Origin: Adineta vaga
Taxonomy: Eukaryota > Animalia > Rotifera
Direction of reading: 5' to 3'
Assembly (NCBI GenBank): GCA_021613535.1
Contig: CP075494.1
Span: forward strand, 9,300,001 to 9,364,000
Length of the DNA stretch: 64,000 nt
The notes under the pieces were generated by a model. It made no database searches, was not told the DNA's origin, and saw only the letters and a program-made list of their open reading frames with translations. The position numbers and the translations under genes were made by a program. Shown one piece after another: positions 3,225 through 23,500 of this stretch (position 1 is the first letter of the stretch; each line of letters starts with the position of its first letter).

Positions 3225-4045
3225 TTAAAAAGTACAACTAACTTTCAACGATATATGCTCCACTATTATCCATGACCTGTCGCCAACGCTAGGGTAAAGA
3301 AAGGATCCCATTTTCGTAGAAGTCCTGGGATTTTTCGCCAAAGTAGTTGAGCAGATCCATTTATAGGTCGTTCTCGTCGTCGAATTATTTTTGCTTAAAT
3401 AATTCGATAAAGAGTGAAACAAGTGGTAGTCTGTAGGAGCCAAGTCTGGTGAGTAAGGGGGATGTGGAACCGTGACCCTTACGAGCTTCAATAATTTTTC
3501 ACGCGTCGACTTTGCAATGTGGGATCTGGCGCTGTCATGCAAGAAATTAGTTCTGTGTTGCTTCCCCCTGAAGTTTTGTTGCAACTTGGTCCCATTGCTG
3601 ACAATAGATATCAGCAGTGATTGTGCAACCAGCTGGAATGAGTTCCCAATGAATAATTCCTTTTACACTCTACCAAACACTCAGCATAATCTTCTTTGAA
3701 TGAAAGTCACTTTTGGGTGTTGCTACACCTGTTTCTCCCGCTCCCAGCCACTGTCGCTTGTGCGTGTGGTTAACATATAATACCCACTTCTCATCCTCAG
3801 TAATAACATTGTGGAGCCATTGGTAGTTGCGATGAGATGTCATTAATTCCATACAAGCGACAATCCTATGTTGAAGCTGATGTGCTGACAACTCATGTGG
3901 TATCCGAACACCATATATTCACGTTTTGCCTAATTCATGAAGATGTGTTTCCACTGTAACATGGGAGCATCCAAGTTGTTCTGCTAAACATTGTGTTGTC
4001 AACTGAGGATCTTCTTCGATAAGCTACTTTAATCCATCCATATCC
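3225..4045 (-). mobile_element. Degenerate mariner (Tc1/mariner) transposase remnant, 5'-truncated and frameshifted
   Basis: VITEDEKWVLYVN, KIMLSVW, FLHDSARSH and HPPYSPDLAPTDYHLF mariner motifs are spread over several frames. No TIRs were recognisable. Confidence 0.93.
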
Positions 4046-4097: not shown

Positions 4098-4681
4098 TTT
4101 TTCTAATTTGCTTAGGTACTTGGAATAGGTCTGATACTTCTGGGATGGATAGAATTTATTATTCTGCATCGAATGGTATAGGTTGAGAGGGGGGAGGTTA
4201 TTGACCAAGAACCAGGGATTTCACCCAAAATACTGGGCAAATGGATGACTACACCCAGTAAGCCTTGCTGATATTCCCTTTGAGAGTTGGAATAATTACA
4301 TGCGAAATGTTTCCGTATGAATGACAACATAGTATTTTCATTGCTATAATCTTTTGTAAAAGAAGATTTTATACAACTGTAAGTTACGGAAATCCTTAAA
4401 AATCAGTTTCAATGTAAATTTGTACGTTTAAATAATTGTAGATGTCATATGTTCTATACTTTTCATGTGGTAGATTAGAAAAGTAGAACTTTTCCTGACA
4501 TAGACTATTTGAAGCATCATCTAGTAACTGTTTGTATATTAGCTTTGTTACATCTTGTTACAGACCGTCAAAATATTTGAGTTATATATAGATCGGATTG
4601 AAAGAATGGATGTTATGACATTTCTCTGTTAATCTTAAGCAATTAATGTAAAGAAAATGTAGATATTATTGTGATGCTATC

Positions 4682-4916
4682 CCCAGGACGGACGTTCCGG
4701 CCTCCGGATCCGAAAGGAACCTTCCAGAAATCACGCCTTTCTGAGGATATTCCGGACAGTTCCAGCTAGTTCCAAAAGGTTCCGACTGGAACTTACTGGA
4801 AGTTAGTTAGAAGCGAGTGGAAAAGTCCGAAAATATCTGGTTCGGAATCCTGCTTCCATGAAATTGCCGGAATGTTCTGGTTTCGACCGGATCCGGCTCG
4901 GATTTTTCGACCTGGG
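4682..4916. mobile_element. 235-bp GC-rich non-autonomous DNA element (MITE) with CCCAGG...CCTGGG termini and 2-bp TSD (TC)
   Basis: tc|CCCAGGACG...TCGACCTGGG|tc, with many internal TTCC/GGAA/CCGG motifs. GC-rich in an AT-rich background. Confidence 0.85.
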
Positions 4917-5729
4917 TCAACATATAAGTTGTCGTTAGTGATTCTAATTATGTGTTCAAATGGATGGGTTTAATCAAAAACACAGAAATATGAACAGACT
5001 TGTTTACATGAATAAAAAACAATCAAATCAGAATATAGAGAAAAGAAAAGATATCGAGATATATAAAACTGCGGCTGAGTGAAAGAAGAGAAAAATGTAT
5101 ATACATCATATGTAATACAAGAAAGATCGATATATATATCATTAAATTAAGAAAAAGTAAGATTCATCATGTATCTCGAGGGGTGTTCAGAGCGTGATGA
5201 GAGTAAGACTTAATATCGATGAACATTTAACAGAAATCCAAATGAATAAATCTTAAAAATGACTTTATTAAATCTATAAAGAAAACTTTTTATTTTATAA
5301 TAAAATAAATATTTTCAACAAAGCAGCGATAATTTATCGATGATAAATATTGAAAATTATTTGGCCGATATTCTACGTCATATAAAATAACGTCTTATAC
5401 TGTGTAACATAATTATTTGGATCAAACAGTTTTTTTACAAAGACAGAATGAATACATACATGCGTGAATATATCCTCTGATTTAGTAAAATAAATTTCAG
5501 CCACAAGTTTTTTCTAATATTTTCGATCACAATAGATATCGGAATTACACCATAGCTGAACGATTTCCTTACACGCAATTGTTACGTTCTGTGCAGCAAT
5601 CTATGTACGATTAAAAATAAAAGAAACAACAAACTGTACATTGGATCGTCTATCTTTGTGTTTCAACATCTTGATTTGAAGGTGAAGACACATGTTATTC
5701 TTAAAACTATAATAATAACAATAATACTG

Positions 5730-17386: not shown

Positions 17387-17892
17387 TCATTCCATTCAAT
17401 ATATAGGAATTTAATAGCTACACTATGATAATGTATATCTATCTTGAGAAAAAAAAATAGCAAACTTATCTTTTCGTATAACGCTGTGGTTCGCATGTGA
17501 AATGATTGTATTTGGTGATTTTCTCTTCCTTCTCTTTTTTCTTTTCTTCGTTATTGATGGCCATCTTTTTCTTTTGCTTTTAATATATACATATACATAC
17601 ATTAAACATTGTTTACATTTATACGTTCAGTTTTATATTTGAAAAGAAATACAAACATCGATTATTAACATTTTCTTCTTTGATTTATAAAGAAATTCTG
17701 CTTCGTTTTCAATGGTTTTGTATCTCTACGTTCAGCAGTGTATTTGTTCGTAAGAAATGAAATACAAAATTAGATAAAAAAATATGTGTCGTCAATTGAG
17801 ATCATATGTTCGCATAAATCCTACTATTATATGTTGTCATATGCACTCAAAACCTCCGCGAACACATTACTAGTGAACCTTGTTCTCTCAAT

Positions 17893-17975
17893 ATTGCATC
17901 AGGGTATTGCGAAAGAAAAGAAAAAAGAAGAACGCAAATGACGTCACCAATACACAGAACTCGATTCCATATAAA
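17893..17975 (+). promoter_or_regulatory. AOX promoter: CARE/AARE, CRE, CCAAT, TATA
   Basis: ATTGCATCA 17893-17901 (reverse complement TGATGCAAT), TGACGTCA 17939-17946, CCAAT at 17947, TATAAA 17970-17975. Confidence 0.6.
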
Positions 17976-18020
17976 CATTACGATAGGCGTTCTATACTAT
18001 ATGATTTTCTAGGATACAAA

Positions 18021-19245
18021 ATGAGTTTAATGATAAGAACAACAAATTTATTACTTCATAATTCTCATTTGACTTCGTCAACAGTAAAATGTTTATCTCA
18101 GTTGAATTATATTCAACCATGTGTCTCTCTTCATACATGTTTACCGTTGATGAACGAAGGACAACAGCAACATCATTTAACAGAAATTGAACAGAAACGT
18201 AAGTAGAAAATATTTCATACCTATTGATAATTGTTATTGTGCAAAAAATTTGAAAAATTATACATAGCATCAAATGATTATATGTTACATCATGAAATCT
18301 ATTCGGAAAAGGAACTGCAAAATATCAAAATAACTCATAAAAAACTCGAATCGTGGCATGATCGAGTTGCTTATGCAGCTGTTCGTACATTACGTTTATT
18401 TTTCGATACATTCACCGGTTATCTTCATGGATCGACAATGACAAAATATGGGTATCGAAAACAATCTATGACGGAAGAACAATGGTTACGACGTTTTATA
18501 TTTCTTGAAACTATTGCTGGTGTACCAGGCATGGTTGCTGGAATGACTCGTCATATGAAATCACTTCGTAAGCTGAAGTTAATATGAAGCTGAAGATCAG
18601 TTTCGATATTTAAAGGTACAATGCGTCGTGATCATGGATGGATACATACACTTTTGTCTGAAGCTGAAAATGAACGAATGCATCTATTAACATTTTTAGA
18701 ATTACGACAACCAGGATGGATGTTTCGTGGATTTGTTCTTTTAGGTCAAGGTGCATTTTTCAAGTAAATATCGTTCTTATTCTATTCAATATATCTCAAA
18801 AGAGATTTATTTTTTCAGTGCATTCTTTCTGACTTATCTTCTTTCACCAAAAATATGTCATCGATTCGTTGGTTTCTTGGAAGAAGAAGCAGTCATAACT
18901 TATACTCGATGTCTTGAAGATCTTGATGCAGAAAAACTTCCAGCTTGGTCTCATTTACCAGCACCACAAATTGCTAAGAAGTATTGGAAATTATCAGCTA
19001 ATGCAGTTCTAAGAGATGTCTTATTAGCTATACGTGCTGATGAAGCTACTCATCGTCAGTATGTATTTACAGCTCTAAATCAGATCTATAGATTTCTCAT
19101 TGTAAACTTTTCTTTTAGAGTTAATCATAAATTAGCTGATGTTGGACCTAATGCACCAAATCCATTTTTGATTGAAGTAAATCAAACACAAGATCCACCA
19201 AGTATCGAAGAACAACGAACAATCGATACAGCAGATAAAAAATAA
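18021..19245 (+). CDS. AOX: Mitochondrial alternative oxidase, 5 exons
   Basis: Diiron motifs [28 protein letters not shown] and RADEATHR. The N-terminus is Ser/Thr/Leu-rich, lacks acidic residues and resembles a presequence. Confidence 0.97.
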
Positions 19246-19846
19246 ACATTTATTTTGACTAAATTCTTTTCGCTTTTATAAAACAATATTTACATTCTCT
19301 AATATCGATGAGTTTGAAAAAAACATGTAAAACTCCAATTATGAGCAAATAACTTACCACTTGATTGTAATGATATAGATCTACATTCGAAATTCATATA
19401 TATTCAATATATTATTGATTTATTCAAGTCACGAGGCAATAAGTGTGCGTAATATTGGATAAATAGTCGATCGGAGTATGTAGTACACTTCATTTCTTTC
19501 CTTGGTCTTCTATCGTCGATACACTCCATTGATTTTACATCCTTACATTATCTAATACGATGACATATGTGCGATATGTGTTTCTCTTCCTATTCTTTTT
19601 AGTCCAATAATTATTATTTCAAAGTATACTTTGAAAATCAAGGCATATAATGACGTGCATAATCAAAATGTGTACTCTTTATCTCCTTCCGAAGAAAAAT
19701 CGAGAAGCTTCTGCATTGCTTATTCTTAACCCAACCTCCATACACGCCCCTTTCACTTCATAACCGTATATAAACCTTAGACAAAATCTGTATATTTCAT
19801 TTTTTGAAAAAGTATTTCTTACTCTTCAACGTTTTCGAATCAAACA

Positions 19847-20129
19847 ATGGAAAAAATTACTGAAGCATGCAAAGCTGGTGTTGAAAAAGTCAAAGAAACT
19901 GTCTCTGGAACCAGTAAAGAAGCTAACAAAGAAGTTGCCAAAGATTCCAATCAAAGTTTAGGCACACGTGCTGAAGCATGTTGCAATGCTGTCGGTTAGT
20001 AAATTCTTATAAAAAAACGATCTCTACTTCAATTAATAAACATTCATATTTTCCTATTTAGGTGACAAAATCGATGAAACAAAACATGCTGTTAAAAAGG
20101 AAGAACACAAACAAGAAGCAACTCATTAA
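19847..20129 (+). CDS. grg1: 71-aa Grg1 (fungal glucose-repressible / ccg-1)-like hydrophilic protein, 2 exons
   Basis: Exons 19847-19994 and 20062-20129 give MEKITEACKAGVEKVKETVSGTSKEANKEVAKDSNQSLGTRAEACCNAVGDKIDETKHAVKKEEHKQEATH, with the Grg1 signature SKEANKxVAKDS..GTR. TATATAAA at 19767. Confidence 0.9.
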
Positions 20130-20519
20130 ATTTGCTCAATACGACTGTGTACAATAGATAATCACAAATTACGAACATTTGTTTTCGTTTATATCTTTAT
20201 AAATTAATCAATACTAACAGAAATAATAAAAAATAGAAAAATATCTTTCATAATCATAGTATTTAATTTATCACTAGTAGCAGTAGCAAAAATGTTCTAT
20301 AACAAGAAAAGAATGTTTGTTTCTCATCGTATTGGGATGATGTTTAAACACATCGATTTATCAGTAGTGTAACAAAAATATATACATAATTTATTATTAG
20401 TTCTTCATTGTATTTTTCATTATCAGATCACACGTGCTTTTTGTTTGTAAACACACTCATAATGAGCAAAAATGTCTTGTAACATACAAAGTAACAGTCT
20501 ATTAAAAATCTTGATTTAC

Positions 20520-23500
20520 TTATGATAGATCATCGATTTCAAATCTGTTTATATCAATTAGTGTTTTCTATTATAAAAAGAATAGATAATTTACACATGT
20601 ATCATTTTTATTTAATAAGAATTAAACTTAACTTGTGTAGTAGTCTGTGATTGTTTTATTGTCTAATAAAAGAAGGAGATGACAGATTTATTCAGTAAAG
20701 TCTTACTGTCTTACCTGAATGCAATATTGTTTCTGATTGATTTCTATGATCAATTGTTATCGTAGTAATTGATTTATTTGTATTATTTTTAGAAGACGTT
20801 GATTTTGAAACGTCTGTTGATGTTTGTTTAGATCGTTTGAAATCATCGTTTGTTTCGTCATTGAGTATCTGTTGTAATAGAAGATTATCTTGAAAGAGAT
20901 TATCACTTGTCATTGTTGTTGATATTCTTGGTAAGACAAGAATTTTTGTTGTTGATCGATCTTCAAGTAATTTCAATCCATGTTTCGTTAAAGAACGTCT
21001 TATAAATACTGGCGCTTCATAAACACATTTAGTTATCTGATTTCGAACAGAACCAGTAATAAGTAGAAGATCTTCATATAACTGAATAATATCATCTGTT
21101 GAACATGTTTTATCATTATAAATGAGTAAACCTGCATTTAATAAGCGTCTATTGATTAGAGTAAAATCAGTCATTAGTCGATTCTCGTGTGTTTTTATTC
21201 CTGATTGTTGAAATGGTGAAATATTTGGTAGAATACGTAATGCCAAATGAATACCTCGAAAAGAAAAATCATGAACACAATTCAGATTTTTCGTTTGACA
21301 ATTACTATTTGAACATACTCATTTCAAGCCAAACGATATCCCATAATGCATATGTATTAAAAATATGAAATAATTTTTGTTTTGAAACGAAAAATACTGT
21401 GACATTGGTCAAACATTTTGCTGTTGATTCATGTTTTTCACCATTATTCATCAATAGATCATGAAGACCAATACAGTGACCAGAACGAAATGAATAACGA
21501 CGATGTATTCGTTCACTTGTAGCTGGATGCATTTGTCGATATTTTTCAAATGTTTCATCGAAATATTCATCGAAATTTTCCTCGATTTGATTATGATGAT
21601 AATATTGATGGATACCATCATCAATTGCAATCGATTTATCTCGGAATTTATTATCCGTTGAATTCGTCATTAGATGGTACCATCGAATATAAAATCCATC
21701 TTCAAAAGCAATACGAACTTGTGTGGTAGAAATCGGATATTTATCATTGAAAGATATAATGTCTGTTACTGTGTCTTTTTCAATAGATCTAAAAATCAAT
21801 AAATCGATGGGGAGTAAAAATATTCTAATCATACTTGATAGAATTAATGCCACTAACATAATTTGTATCTACGGATAATATAGATTCTTTTTTGGACCTT
21901 ATCACAGGAATCGTACTGTAACTGAAGTCTTGTCTGATATATTTTCCTTTAGATTTGATATGATTATAGGGATTTAAAATCTGTTGTGTTGTTGATGTCA
22001 TTTTTTTTGAACGATAATTTTCTTTCCATCGTACTTCACTTTGAGATGCGTCTATATCATAGGGATCGAGTTTCCATTCTTCAACGATACCATTTACTAA
22101 TAGATAAACTCCATTGAGTTGATCATTTTTATGCCATAAGAAATCTTGCCAAGAAAAGCTTTGTGGATGTAATAAAGTTTCATTTTCAAAACGTTTTATG
22201 TTTTCATTTGGCAAAGCTTCAAGTAATAATTGTTCAATTTCATTTCTTTGATCAACATTCAATCGTTCATTAGAATAAAGCCAAGAGAATTGTCGAATCC
22301 CAATCATTGGTGAAACAGATGGCATTGTCGATGGTATATGTAAATGAATGTGCATCGTTTTTAATGATTGTTCAAGTAAATCACAATCATCAACATCAAG
22401 AACTCCTCGAGCACGTATTTGTGCTATACCTCGTTTTGCAGTATTGTATAATAAATTAATCGTATGACGTGTTTTGATACTAATTATAGTACCTGGATGA
22501 GTTTCTTGCATTAAAAGAACATGATTTAAAACACTTTTAATGTGTTGAAGTGAAAGTTCACGAATACGAATTCGAATATTTTCTAAAAATAAATTTGAAA
22601 GAGTTGAAAATATGATAAGGAACATAAAATAGTATTTACCATTCTCTGTCAATCGATGTATTATTCGTAGAACTTGTTCTTCAGATGATATATAAGCTAG
22701 ACCAATATCATAACTAATGCTTATATATCTATTGAGAATACAATCAACTAATAGTTGAAGAGGTTGAATCAAAAATAAACATAGAATAATAGATTCGATT
22801 AAACTTAAACTTTTAAGAATATAAAAAGTTAAACATAATTGATTTGTATGTCGTCCTTTCTCAATTAAAATGAAATGAATTATACAACTAAGACAACGAC
22901 AAGTAATACTAAAAGTATATACAATAATCCATATTAGATTTGAACTAGGAAATTTTTGTTGCCGATAATAGGAAAACCAATAATATATTTGAATATAATC
23001 GAAGATTAATAATAGACTAGAAAGAATTTCTAATGTAATATGAAGTGTTTGTATGGTATTATCTAATGATTTATTGCAAAGATTTGTGTGAAGTTGATAG
23101 ATAATAATCATGCATTCGATTAGAATGACAAAAAATGTAAGTAATAAAGAACGAAATAGTTCTTTGAAGAATTGATATTGTTGATCTTGATGGTTAGAAT
23201 ACCAAGGTAGACATTTTTGCCATTGTCGTGTGTTTGTACGTATAAAATTTAATATAGATCGTATTCGAGTTTTACCAATTATATGTTCTTTGATTGTATC
23301 CAGATCAATAAATTGTTTCGGTGTATCAATTGCTTGATCACATAAGGAATTTAATGTGTGAAGTCCATAGGATGATAATTGTCCATTATAATAATTCGAC
23401 CAAAAATGTGTCTTTTGCAATCTGAAATGAATCATGCCTTGTTTCAAATTGATACTAAGAAGATATTGCAAACCTTAAAATTCTTATTCTACAATCTTCA

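Follow-up and report, generated by a model that had tools for sequence, protein, structure and literature searches.

The 64,000-nucleotide stretch of Adineta vaga DNA analysed here (the window) corresponds to C5:9300001-9364000 in a 100.8-Mb assembly of six contigs, and it carries a Grg1-type gene located at 9.32 Mb on chromosome 5. A base-by-base reading of the stretch reveals a spliced and expressed gene with two exons and a product of 71 residues. The start codon ATG at 19847 opens the coding part of exon 1 (19847..19994, plus strand), which provides codons 1-49 and the first base of codon 50 and is recognized by its ORF, its translation and its Pfam match. An intron of 67 bp with GT..AG ends follows (19995..20061, plus strand). 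It has a G+C content of 21%, begins with GTTAGT, ends with TTTAG and lies inside codon 50 in phase 1. The coding part of exon 2 (20062..20129, plus strand), identified from its translation and Pfam match, supplies the two bases that complete codon 50, followed by codons 51-71 and the stop codon TAA (20127-20129). Among the GT..AG pairs that were compared, only that at 19995-20061 unites a strong GTTAGT donor with a frame of 71 codons.

The initial annotation had proposed that a 67-bp intron splits the gene and that the product contains the motif SKEANKEVAKDSNQSLGTR and ends in HKQEATH. Both proposals agree with our reading of the exons and of the GT..AG splice, in that the motif is found in exon 1 and HKQEATH forms the C-terminus encoded by exon 2. 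The gene had also been called hidden, which holds true for an ORF list that takes no account of introns, but not for the public record: the gene is annotated at NCBI as hypothetical protein I4U23_024893 (Adineta vaga), and its family has been published. The annotated protein (P0001, 71 residues) is 100% identical to exon 1, and its C-terminus equals our reading of exon 2.

Transcript contigs from four runs belonging to three studies were compared over the 3,501 letters of positions 17800-21300. In all four runs (X1, X2, X3 and X9), contigs skip exactly 67 bases with GT..AG ends, and thus the proposed splice is present in RNA. We consider the runs to be cDNA because the neighbouring alternative oxidase (AOX) gene has its four introns removed in three of these four runs. 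The unspliced Grg1 intron is spanned by one low-depth contig from run X9. Beyond the stop codon, contigs extend to 20179, 20210, 20420 or 20653 depending on the run, and we therefore assign a 3' untranslated region of uncertain end to 20130..20650 (plus strand). More broadly, 14 runs from six studies contain the whole or part of the stretch. Transcript contigs depart from the assembly at two sites, with a synonymous C>T change at 19912 in the third position of codon 22 (runs X2 and X3) and a T>C change at 20180 in the 3' untranslated region (runs X3 and X9), which are probably allelic or strain variants.

Three short blocks upstream of the start codon are evident when the corresponding regions of A. 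vaga, A. ricciae and Rotaria sordida are aligned. The most distal block (19694..19718, plus strand) resembles a heat-shock element (HSE), with alternating GAA/TTC units and one mismatch. A. ricciae retains its core and R. sordida retains part of it, and matches to the pattern lie at 19694-19706 and 19699-19711. Given that one-mismatch HSE matches in the window occur at the chance level (42 found versus 39.9 expected), we assign weight to this block by virtue of its conservation alone. A second block, CnAACCTCC (19731..19739, plus strand), includes the sequence AACCTCC, which is invariant in the three species. The third is a putative TATA box (CGTATATAAACC; 19765..19776, plus strand) approximately 75 bp before the ATG, and CGTATATA is also invariant across all three species. 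Some transcript contigs begin upstream of the TATA box, at 19619-19752. Elsewhere in the window, six chance-looking HSE matches at 4717-4877 derive from a G+C-richer stretch (4680-4920) that is full of GGAAC/GTTCC units. This stretch, which adjoins a fragment of a mariner-type transposase gene (3670-3891, minus strand; PF01359, E=2.8e-9), is probably a decayed transposon.

Directly upstream of the Grg1 gene is an AOX gene (17984-19349, plus strand), two exons of which match the Pfam AOX profile (E=1e-39 and 5e-29) and whose four introns, at 18199-18267, 18568-18615, 18764-18818 and 19059-19118, are evident from transcript contigs. The remaining neighbours in the window include ARPC4, NOP5, an Na/H exchanger with a cyclic-nucleotide-binding domain and a laminin-G gene. 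The same neighbours recur in A. ricciae, where the order is TPT, NOP5, ARPC4, AOX, Grg1, the cyclic-nucleotide-binding Na/H exchanger and laminin-G, and R. sordida has the order AOX, Grg1, exchanger. The orthologous proteins of A. ricciae (P0005, 80% identity) and R. sordida (P0009, 77% identity) are each 71 residues long, and in their genes, too, a phase-1 intron with a GTTAGT donor follows codon 49 (57 bp in A. ricciae and 62-63 bp in R. sordida). Because these orthologues keep both the intron position and the neighbours, the gene and its intron must be older than the split between Adineta and Rotaria. The gene is under purifying selection, with dN/dS values of 0.08-0.23 when calculated per exon with the split codon omitted.

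An ohnologous block on C2 (C2:10668000-10685999; L023 and L024) matches the 14-30 kb portion of the window. NOP5, ARPC4 and AOX are collinear between the two, and the AOX copies exhibit 57-87% identity by exon. Neither Grg1 nor the Na/H exchanger is found in the C2 block examined, which resumes approximately 1.3 kb further on with the laminin-G-side genes. This looks like loss after the duplication. We considered the block as a clue to the time at which Grg1 arrived and rejected it as uninformative.

Membership of the encoded protein in the Grg1 family is established. Exon 1 alone matches positions 1-50 of the 67-position Pfam Grg1 profile (PF11034) with 58 bits and E=1.1e-15, and the 21 residues of exon 2 alone match positions 51-67 with E=0.071, such that the two matches are collinear and between them cover the entire domain. 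The occurrence of the splice together with these collinear matches is far beyond chance. When searched as a whole, P0001 matches profile positions 1-67 with residues 1-67 of its 71 (80.6 bits, E=9.4e-23), well over the curated gathering threshold of 25 bits, and the proposed resemblance to Grg1/ccg-1 is thereby borne out. In an alignment of 78 family sequences, the invariant columns are M1, E25, K28, A31, K32, D33, R41, A44, D51 and K66 (A. vaga numbering), and P0001 carries every one of them. It also includes the conserved Grg1 core SKEANKEVAKDSN...GTR.

Known fungal Grg1 proteins, such as Neurospora crassa Grg-1 (Ccg-1), Fusarium graminearum P0015 and PaGrg1 (P0084), are likewise 69-71 residues long. 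They align with the A. vaga protein in a common register without gaps and with 50-58% identity over the full length, and residues E25, K28, A31, K32, D33, R41, A44, D51 and K66 are present on both sides of the comparison. There are also differences. The hosts of the Neurospora-, Fusarium- and Podospora-type proteins are fungi, whereas A. vaga is an animal, and the A. vaga protein has cysteines at positions 8, 45 and 46, whereas the sampled fungal proteins have none. The name of the Neurospora protein comes from its induction under glucose starvation, during conidiation or by the clock.

The gene described here is one of several in the genome. The PF11034 model yields 12 matches on five chromosomes of A. 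vaga, and a six-frame HMM scan resolves these into eight genes, including the AOX-linked gene. Four genes encode two Grg1 domains (C1 at 2.24 Mb, C4 at 12.27 Mb, C2 at 11.53 Mb and C5 at 7.98 Mb), and two encode a single domain of a second type (C2 at 12.43 Mb, corresponding to P0090 or I4U23_009616, and C5 at 7.28 Mb). The other is a divergent Grg1-like gene (L012, C3:5814945-5815133, minus strand) that scores 27.6 bits, slightly above the cut-off. A weaker second unit lies approximately 300 bp upstream of L012, and the branch of L012 in our tree is very long (2.26). The two-domain gene models are computational only. For the pair at C2:11.534 Mb (L003 1040-1662, plus strand) and C5:7.983 Mb (L004, minus strand), the best model gives 147 residues and three introns, after codons 16, 52 and 94 and all in phase 1. 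The other pair comprises L001 (C4:12.270 Mb) and L002 (C1:2.243 Mb).

The number of genes recovered by our scan equals that published by Moris et al. (2024, BMC Biol 22:11, PMC10809525), whose report describes eight PF11034 genes in A. vaga. According to that report, six of the eight genes reach high TPM and are over-expressed following rehydration, one has constitutively high expression, and the family is induced around desiccation and rehydration alongside LEA genes. The best BLAST hits are stated to be fungal, and the authors hypothesise that Grg1 was acquired from fungi and has a role in desiccation. They also note that the family was seen earlier in A. ricciae by Boschetti et al. (2011, J Exp Biol 214:59; as cited in PMC10809525). 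In the portions of text and tables available to us, the AOX-linked paralogue is not singled out, and the number 024893 is absent among the FUN_ identifiers of the expression tables, which follow a numbering that differs from the NCBI locus tags. This paralogue may be the constitutive gene or else the one that is not highlighted. The initial reading of the gene is correct, but neither the gene nor the probable acquisition of its family from fungi is new.

A profile search for relatives returned 750 sequences, and among the best 120 of these every named match is from a fungus or a bdelloid rotifer. The fungi in this set include many Ascomycota and the basidiomycete Rhodotorula. The bdelloids span three genera and comprise A. 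vaga, A. ricciae, A. steineri, R. sordida, Didymodactylos carnosus, Rotaria sp. Silwood1 and Rotaria sp. Silwood2. No non-bdelloid animal appears among the named matches in the best 120 of 750, and hence a broad distribution among metazoans, which would have counted against the initial annotation, is not what these matches reveal. The other two outcomes named there as refuting, lack of a Grg1 profile match and lack of a spliced transcript, did not occur either. Metagenome and Logan contigs also provide proteins of 50-53 residues that are 68-82% identical to exon 1 (P0002-P0004, P0006-P0008 and P0010-P0012). Three of these metagenome proteins, read in sequence, stop at the intron position or within three residues of it. 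Proteins of this group are probably rotifer first exons that were called by prokaryotic gene finders.

A tree of 48 rows and 71 columns places the rotifer rows in three groups and identifies no donor lineage. The attempt to name a donor by phylogeny was given up, as 71 columns do not resolve the backbone. Forcing the 16 rotifer rows into a single clade costs 1.2 log-likelihood units and is not rejected (AU p=0.44), and 28% of bootstrap trees already group all rotifer rows together. These data are compatible with a single acquisition from a donor that they do not allow us to name. A two-domain protein is also found in Rhodotorula toruloides, and because its two domains are mutual sisters (100/99), the doubling of the domain must have occurred independently in Rhodotorula and in rotifers.

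Intron positions were also compared among family members. The AOX-linked gene has its intron at codon 49 in phase 1, a rotifer group designated B has one at codon 16 in phase 0, and the introns predicted for the two-domain genes are those given above. In the three fungal Grg1 genes examined, the positions are 12/1 and 52/0, 29/0 and 40/2, and 40/2 (codon/phase), respectively. Shared introns were sought as a mark of transfer at the DNA level, and none is shared with these three fungal genes. Two fungal loci (L013:1501-1889 and L014:1501-1882) encode an identical protein of 69 residues (P0015) and differ only by synonymous changes, and yet their introns differ wholly, with positions 29/phase 0 and 40/phase 2 in one and 12/phase 1 and 52/phase 0 in the other. 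This reflects either strikingly fast intron turnover or two paralogues that are kept identical. Given that an identical protein can have differing introns, we consider that intron position carries little weight in this family.

We infer that Grg1 most likely passed from a fungus to the stem lineage of the bdelloid rotifers, and that duplication, domain doubling and the gain of rotifer-type introns probably came afterwards. The AOX-linked paralogue has occupied its place between the AOX and Na/H exchanger genes since a time earlier than the Adineta-Rotaria split. Vertical descent is an alternative, in which fungi and animals would both have inherited the gene from a shared ancestor and every animal lineage other than the bdelloid rotifers would have lost it. 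In its favour, fungi are the sister group of animals, the gene has a long history within bdelloids (Adineta, Rotaria and Didymodactylos) with fixed synteny and host-type introns, and the HGT pipeline Alienomics is reported not to have flagged the A. vaga Grg1 genes (PMC10809525). However, this history requires many independent losses, and no further animal is seen among the named matches in the best 120 of 750. Moreover, the rotifer proteins lie among the fungal sequences and are about as distant from them as fungi are from one another, and approximately a billion years of separation would not be expected to leave a low-complexity protein of 70 residues as close as the 50-58% full-length identity to ascomycete Grg1 that we observe. 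We therefore judge vertical descent to be very improbable. The match could also be explained as contamination from a fungus, as an artefact of assembly or as a fragment that is decaying and non-functional, and the unusual taxonomic pattern is the one observation in favour of such an explanation. The gene resides among ARPC4, NOP5, AOX, exchanger and laminin-G genes inside a chromosome-scale contig of 16,930,519 bp, and this order recurs in A. ricciae and R. sordida, whose assemblies are independent. Its short, A+T-rich intron is akin to the four introns of AOX (48-69 bp, GT..AG), and a sequence that recurs across so many runs and studies, and that is spliced, expressed and under constraint, does not behave as debris. 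The case against contamination that was originally made from physical linkage is thus fully upheld by chromosome location, conserved synteny and the rotifer-type intron, and the probability that remains for this class of explanation is close to nil.

Somewhat more credible, but still unlikely, is the possibility that the rotifer subfamilies (AOX-linked, METIKNAANAV-type and two-domain) were derived from several separate fungal donors. When unconstrained, our tree splits the rotifer sequences into three groups on a poorly supported backbone, and intron positions are unlike between the subfamilies. Furthermore, the best fungal match of the AOX-linked gene is from Fusarium, and the best BLAST hits given in the published study vary by paralogue among Microbotryum, Fonsecaea and Cladophialophora (PMC10809525). 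Variation in best hits is nonetheless noise for a protein of 70 residues, and the small cost of a single rotifer clade and the bootstrap trees that already contain one both argue against multiple donors. Likewise, the sister relationship of the two Rhodotorula domains removes any link between rotifers and basidiomycetes on the basis of two-domain architecture. A single transfer from a fungus to the bdelloid stem lineage is accordingly the history that we favour.

With regard to function, the A. vaga protein is 7.7 kDa with a GRAVY value of -1.03, 38% charged residues, and neither aromatic residues nor proline. Hydrophilins, as defined by Garay-Arroyo et al. in 2000, reportedly have more than 6% glycine and a hydrophilicity index above 1. 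The description of this protein as hydrophilin-like therefore holds with respect to hydropathy, where its mean falls below -1, but its glycine content of 5.6% (4/71) is narrowly under the formal value, and that of the R. sordida orthologue is 7.0%. AlphaFold2, when provided with the 78-row alignment, predicts helices at residues 2-31 and 38-70 around a KDSNQS loop with a mean pLDDT of 63, a low confidence that is in keeping with conditional folding. The helical hydrophobic moment is greatest (0.48) in the N-terminal 18 residues. A sequence search of the PDB produced a sole match that is insignificant (E=0.17), and thus no solved relative.

Two groups of stress proteins offer points of comparison. 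Yeast Hsp12 (HSP9_HSP12, PF04119) and the hydrophilins are also small, hydrophilic proteins of high charge that are predicted to form amphipathic helices and to have little order. By language-model features, the nearest clusters other than Grg1 itself are HSP9/HSP12 (0.85) and plant KIN2/LEA (0.82), which we treat as leads only. The match to PF04119 is below threshold (13.9-14.1 bits versus 26.3, E=0.065-0.077), and so the likeness to Hsp12 concerns a possible mode of working, and does not denote family membership or a significant sequence relationship. Similarly, LEA proteins of the KIN2/LEA1_2_D7 type from rotifers and plants resemble the protein in composition and have a feature-space score of 0.82, whereas the A. 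vaga protein has no LEA Pfam match, lacks 11-mer repeats and is much shorter. By analogy with Hsp12 and the hydrophilins, the protein may be largely disordered in water and form an amphipathic helix upon water loss or at membranes, and the helical form would shield proteins or membranes through metabolic arrest. A small hydrophilin-like protectant is the best functional reading that we can offer, based on the composition of the protein, the published induction of the family and the expression of fungal Grg1 in starvation and conidiation. We found no functional test of any Grg1 protein in the literature, and for this reason the protective mechanism rests on analogy.

The initial annotation also suggested that the three cysteines might add redox sensitivity. 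The cysteines are indeed present, but the idea is weakened by their distribution, since only Cys8 is conserved and the Cys45-Cys46 pair is found in A. vaga only. Within the AOX-linked subfamily, Cys8 is retained by the orthologues of A. ricciae and of two Rotaria and by several environmental relatives, and a Didymodactylos protein that belongs to the second subfamily (P0102) has a cysteine at this position too. Other Grg1 paralogues have single cysteines at other positions. To judge from this conservation, a redox role for Cys8 is at most a weak lead. One could go further and envision the AOX-linked paralogue as functionally distinct, kept beside AOX through all of Adineta and Rotaria history and driven by a conserved HSE-like promoter, with a subfamily-specific Cys8 that would make it a redox-responsive protectant deployed with AOX under oxidative or desiccation stress. 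This paralogue may be regulated by stress, but we consider the more elaborate proposal to be quite improbable.

Taken as a whole, the gene is best viewed as a bdelloid member of the Grg1 family that the bdelloid stem lineage probably acquired from a fungus and that probably encodes a small, conditionally folding protectant, and we assign this complete reading a probability of roughly 0.8. Relative to the earlier report (PMC10809525), what is new for this one paralogue is its exact splice and confirmed gene model with RNA support, its orthologues, the conserved AOX-Grg1-exchanger neighbourhood, the evidence of selection from dN/dS, and the intron comparison, which adds the small point that rotifer Grg1 introns are at positions unlike those in the three fungal genes examined. 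Following up the AOX-linked gene in this manner raises no new question.

Bdelloid rotifers are the textbook example of an animal group in which numerous foreign genes go together with the ability to withstand complete drying. As has already been reported, a Grg1 family of fungal type with induction upon rehydration is consistent with this picture, and the AOX-linked paralogue is one of its long-established members.
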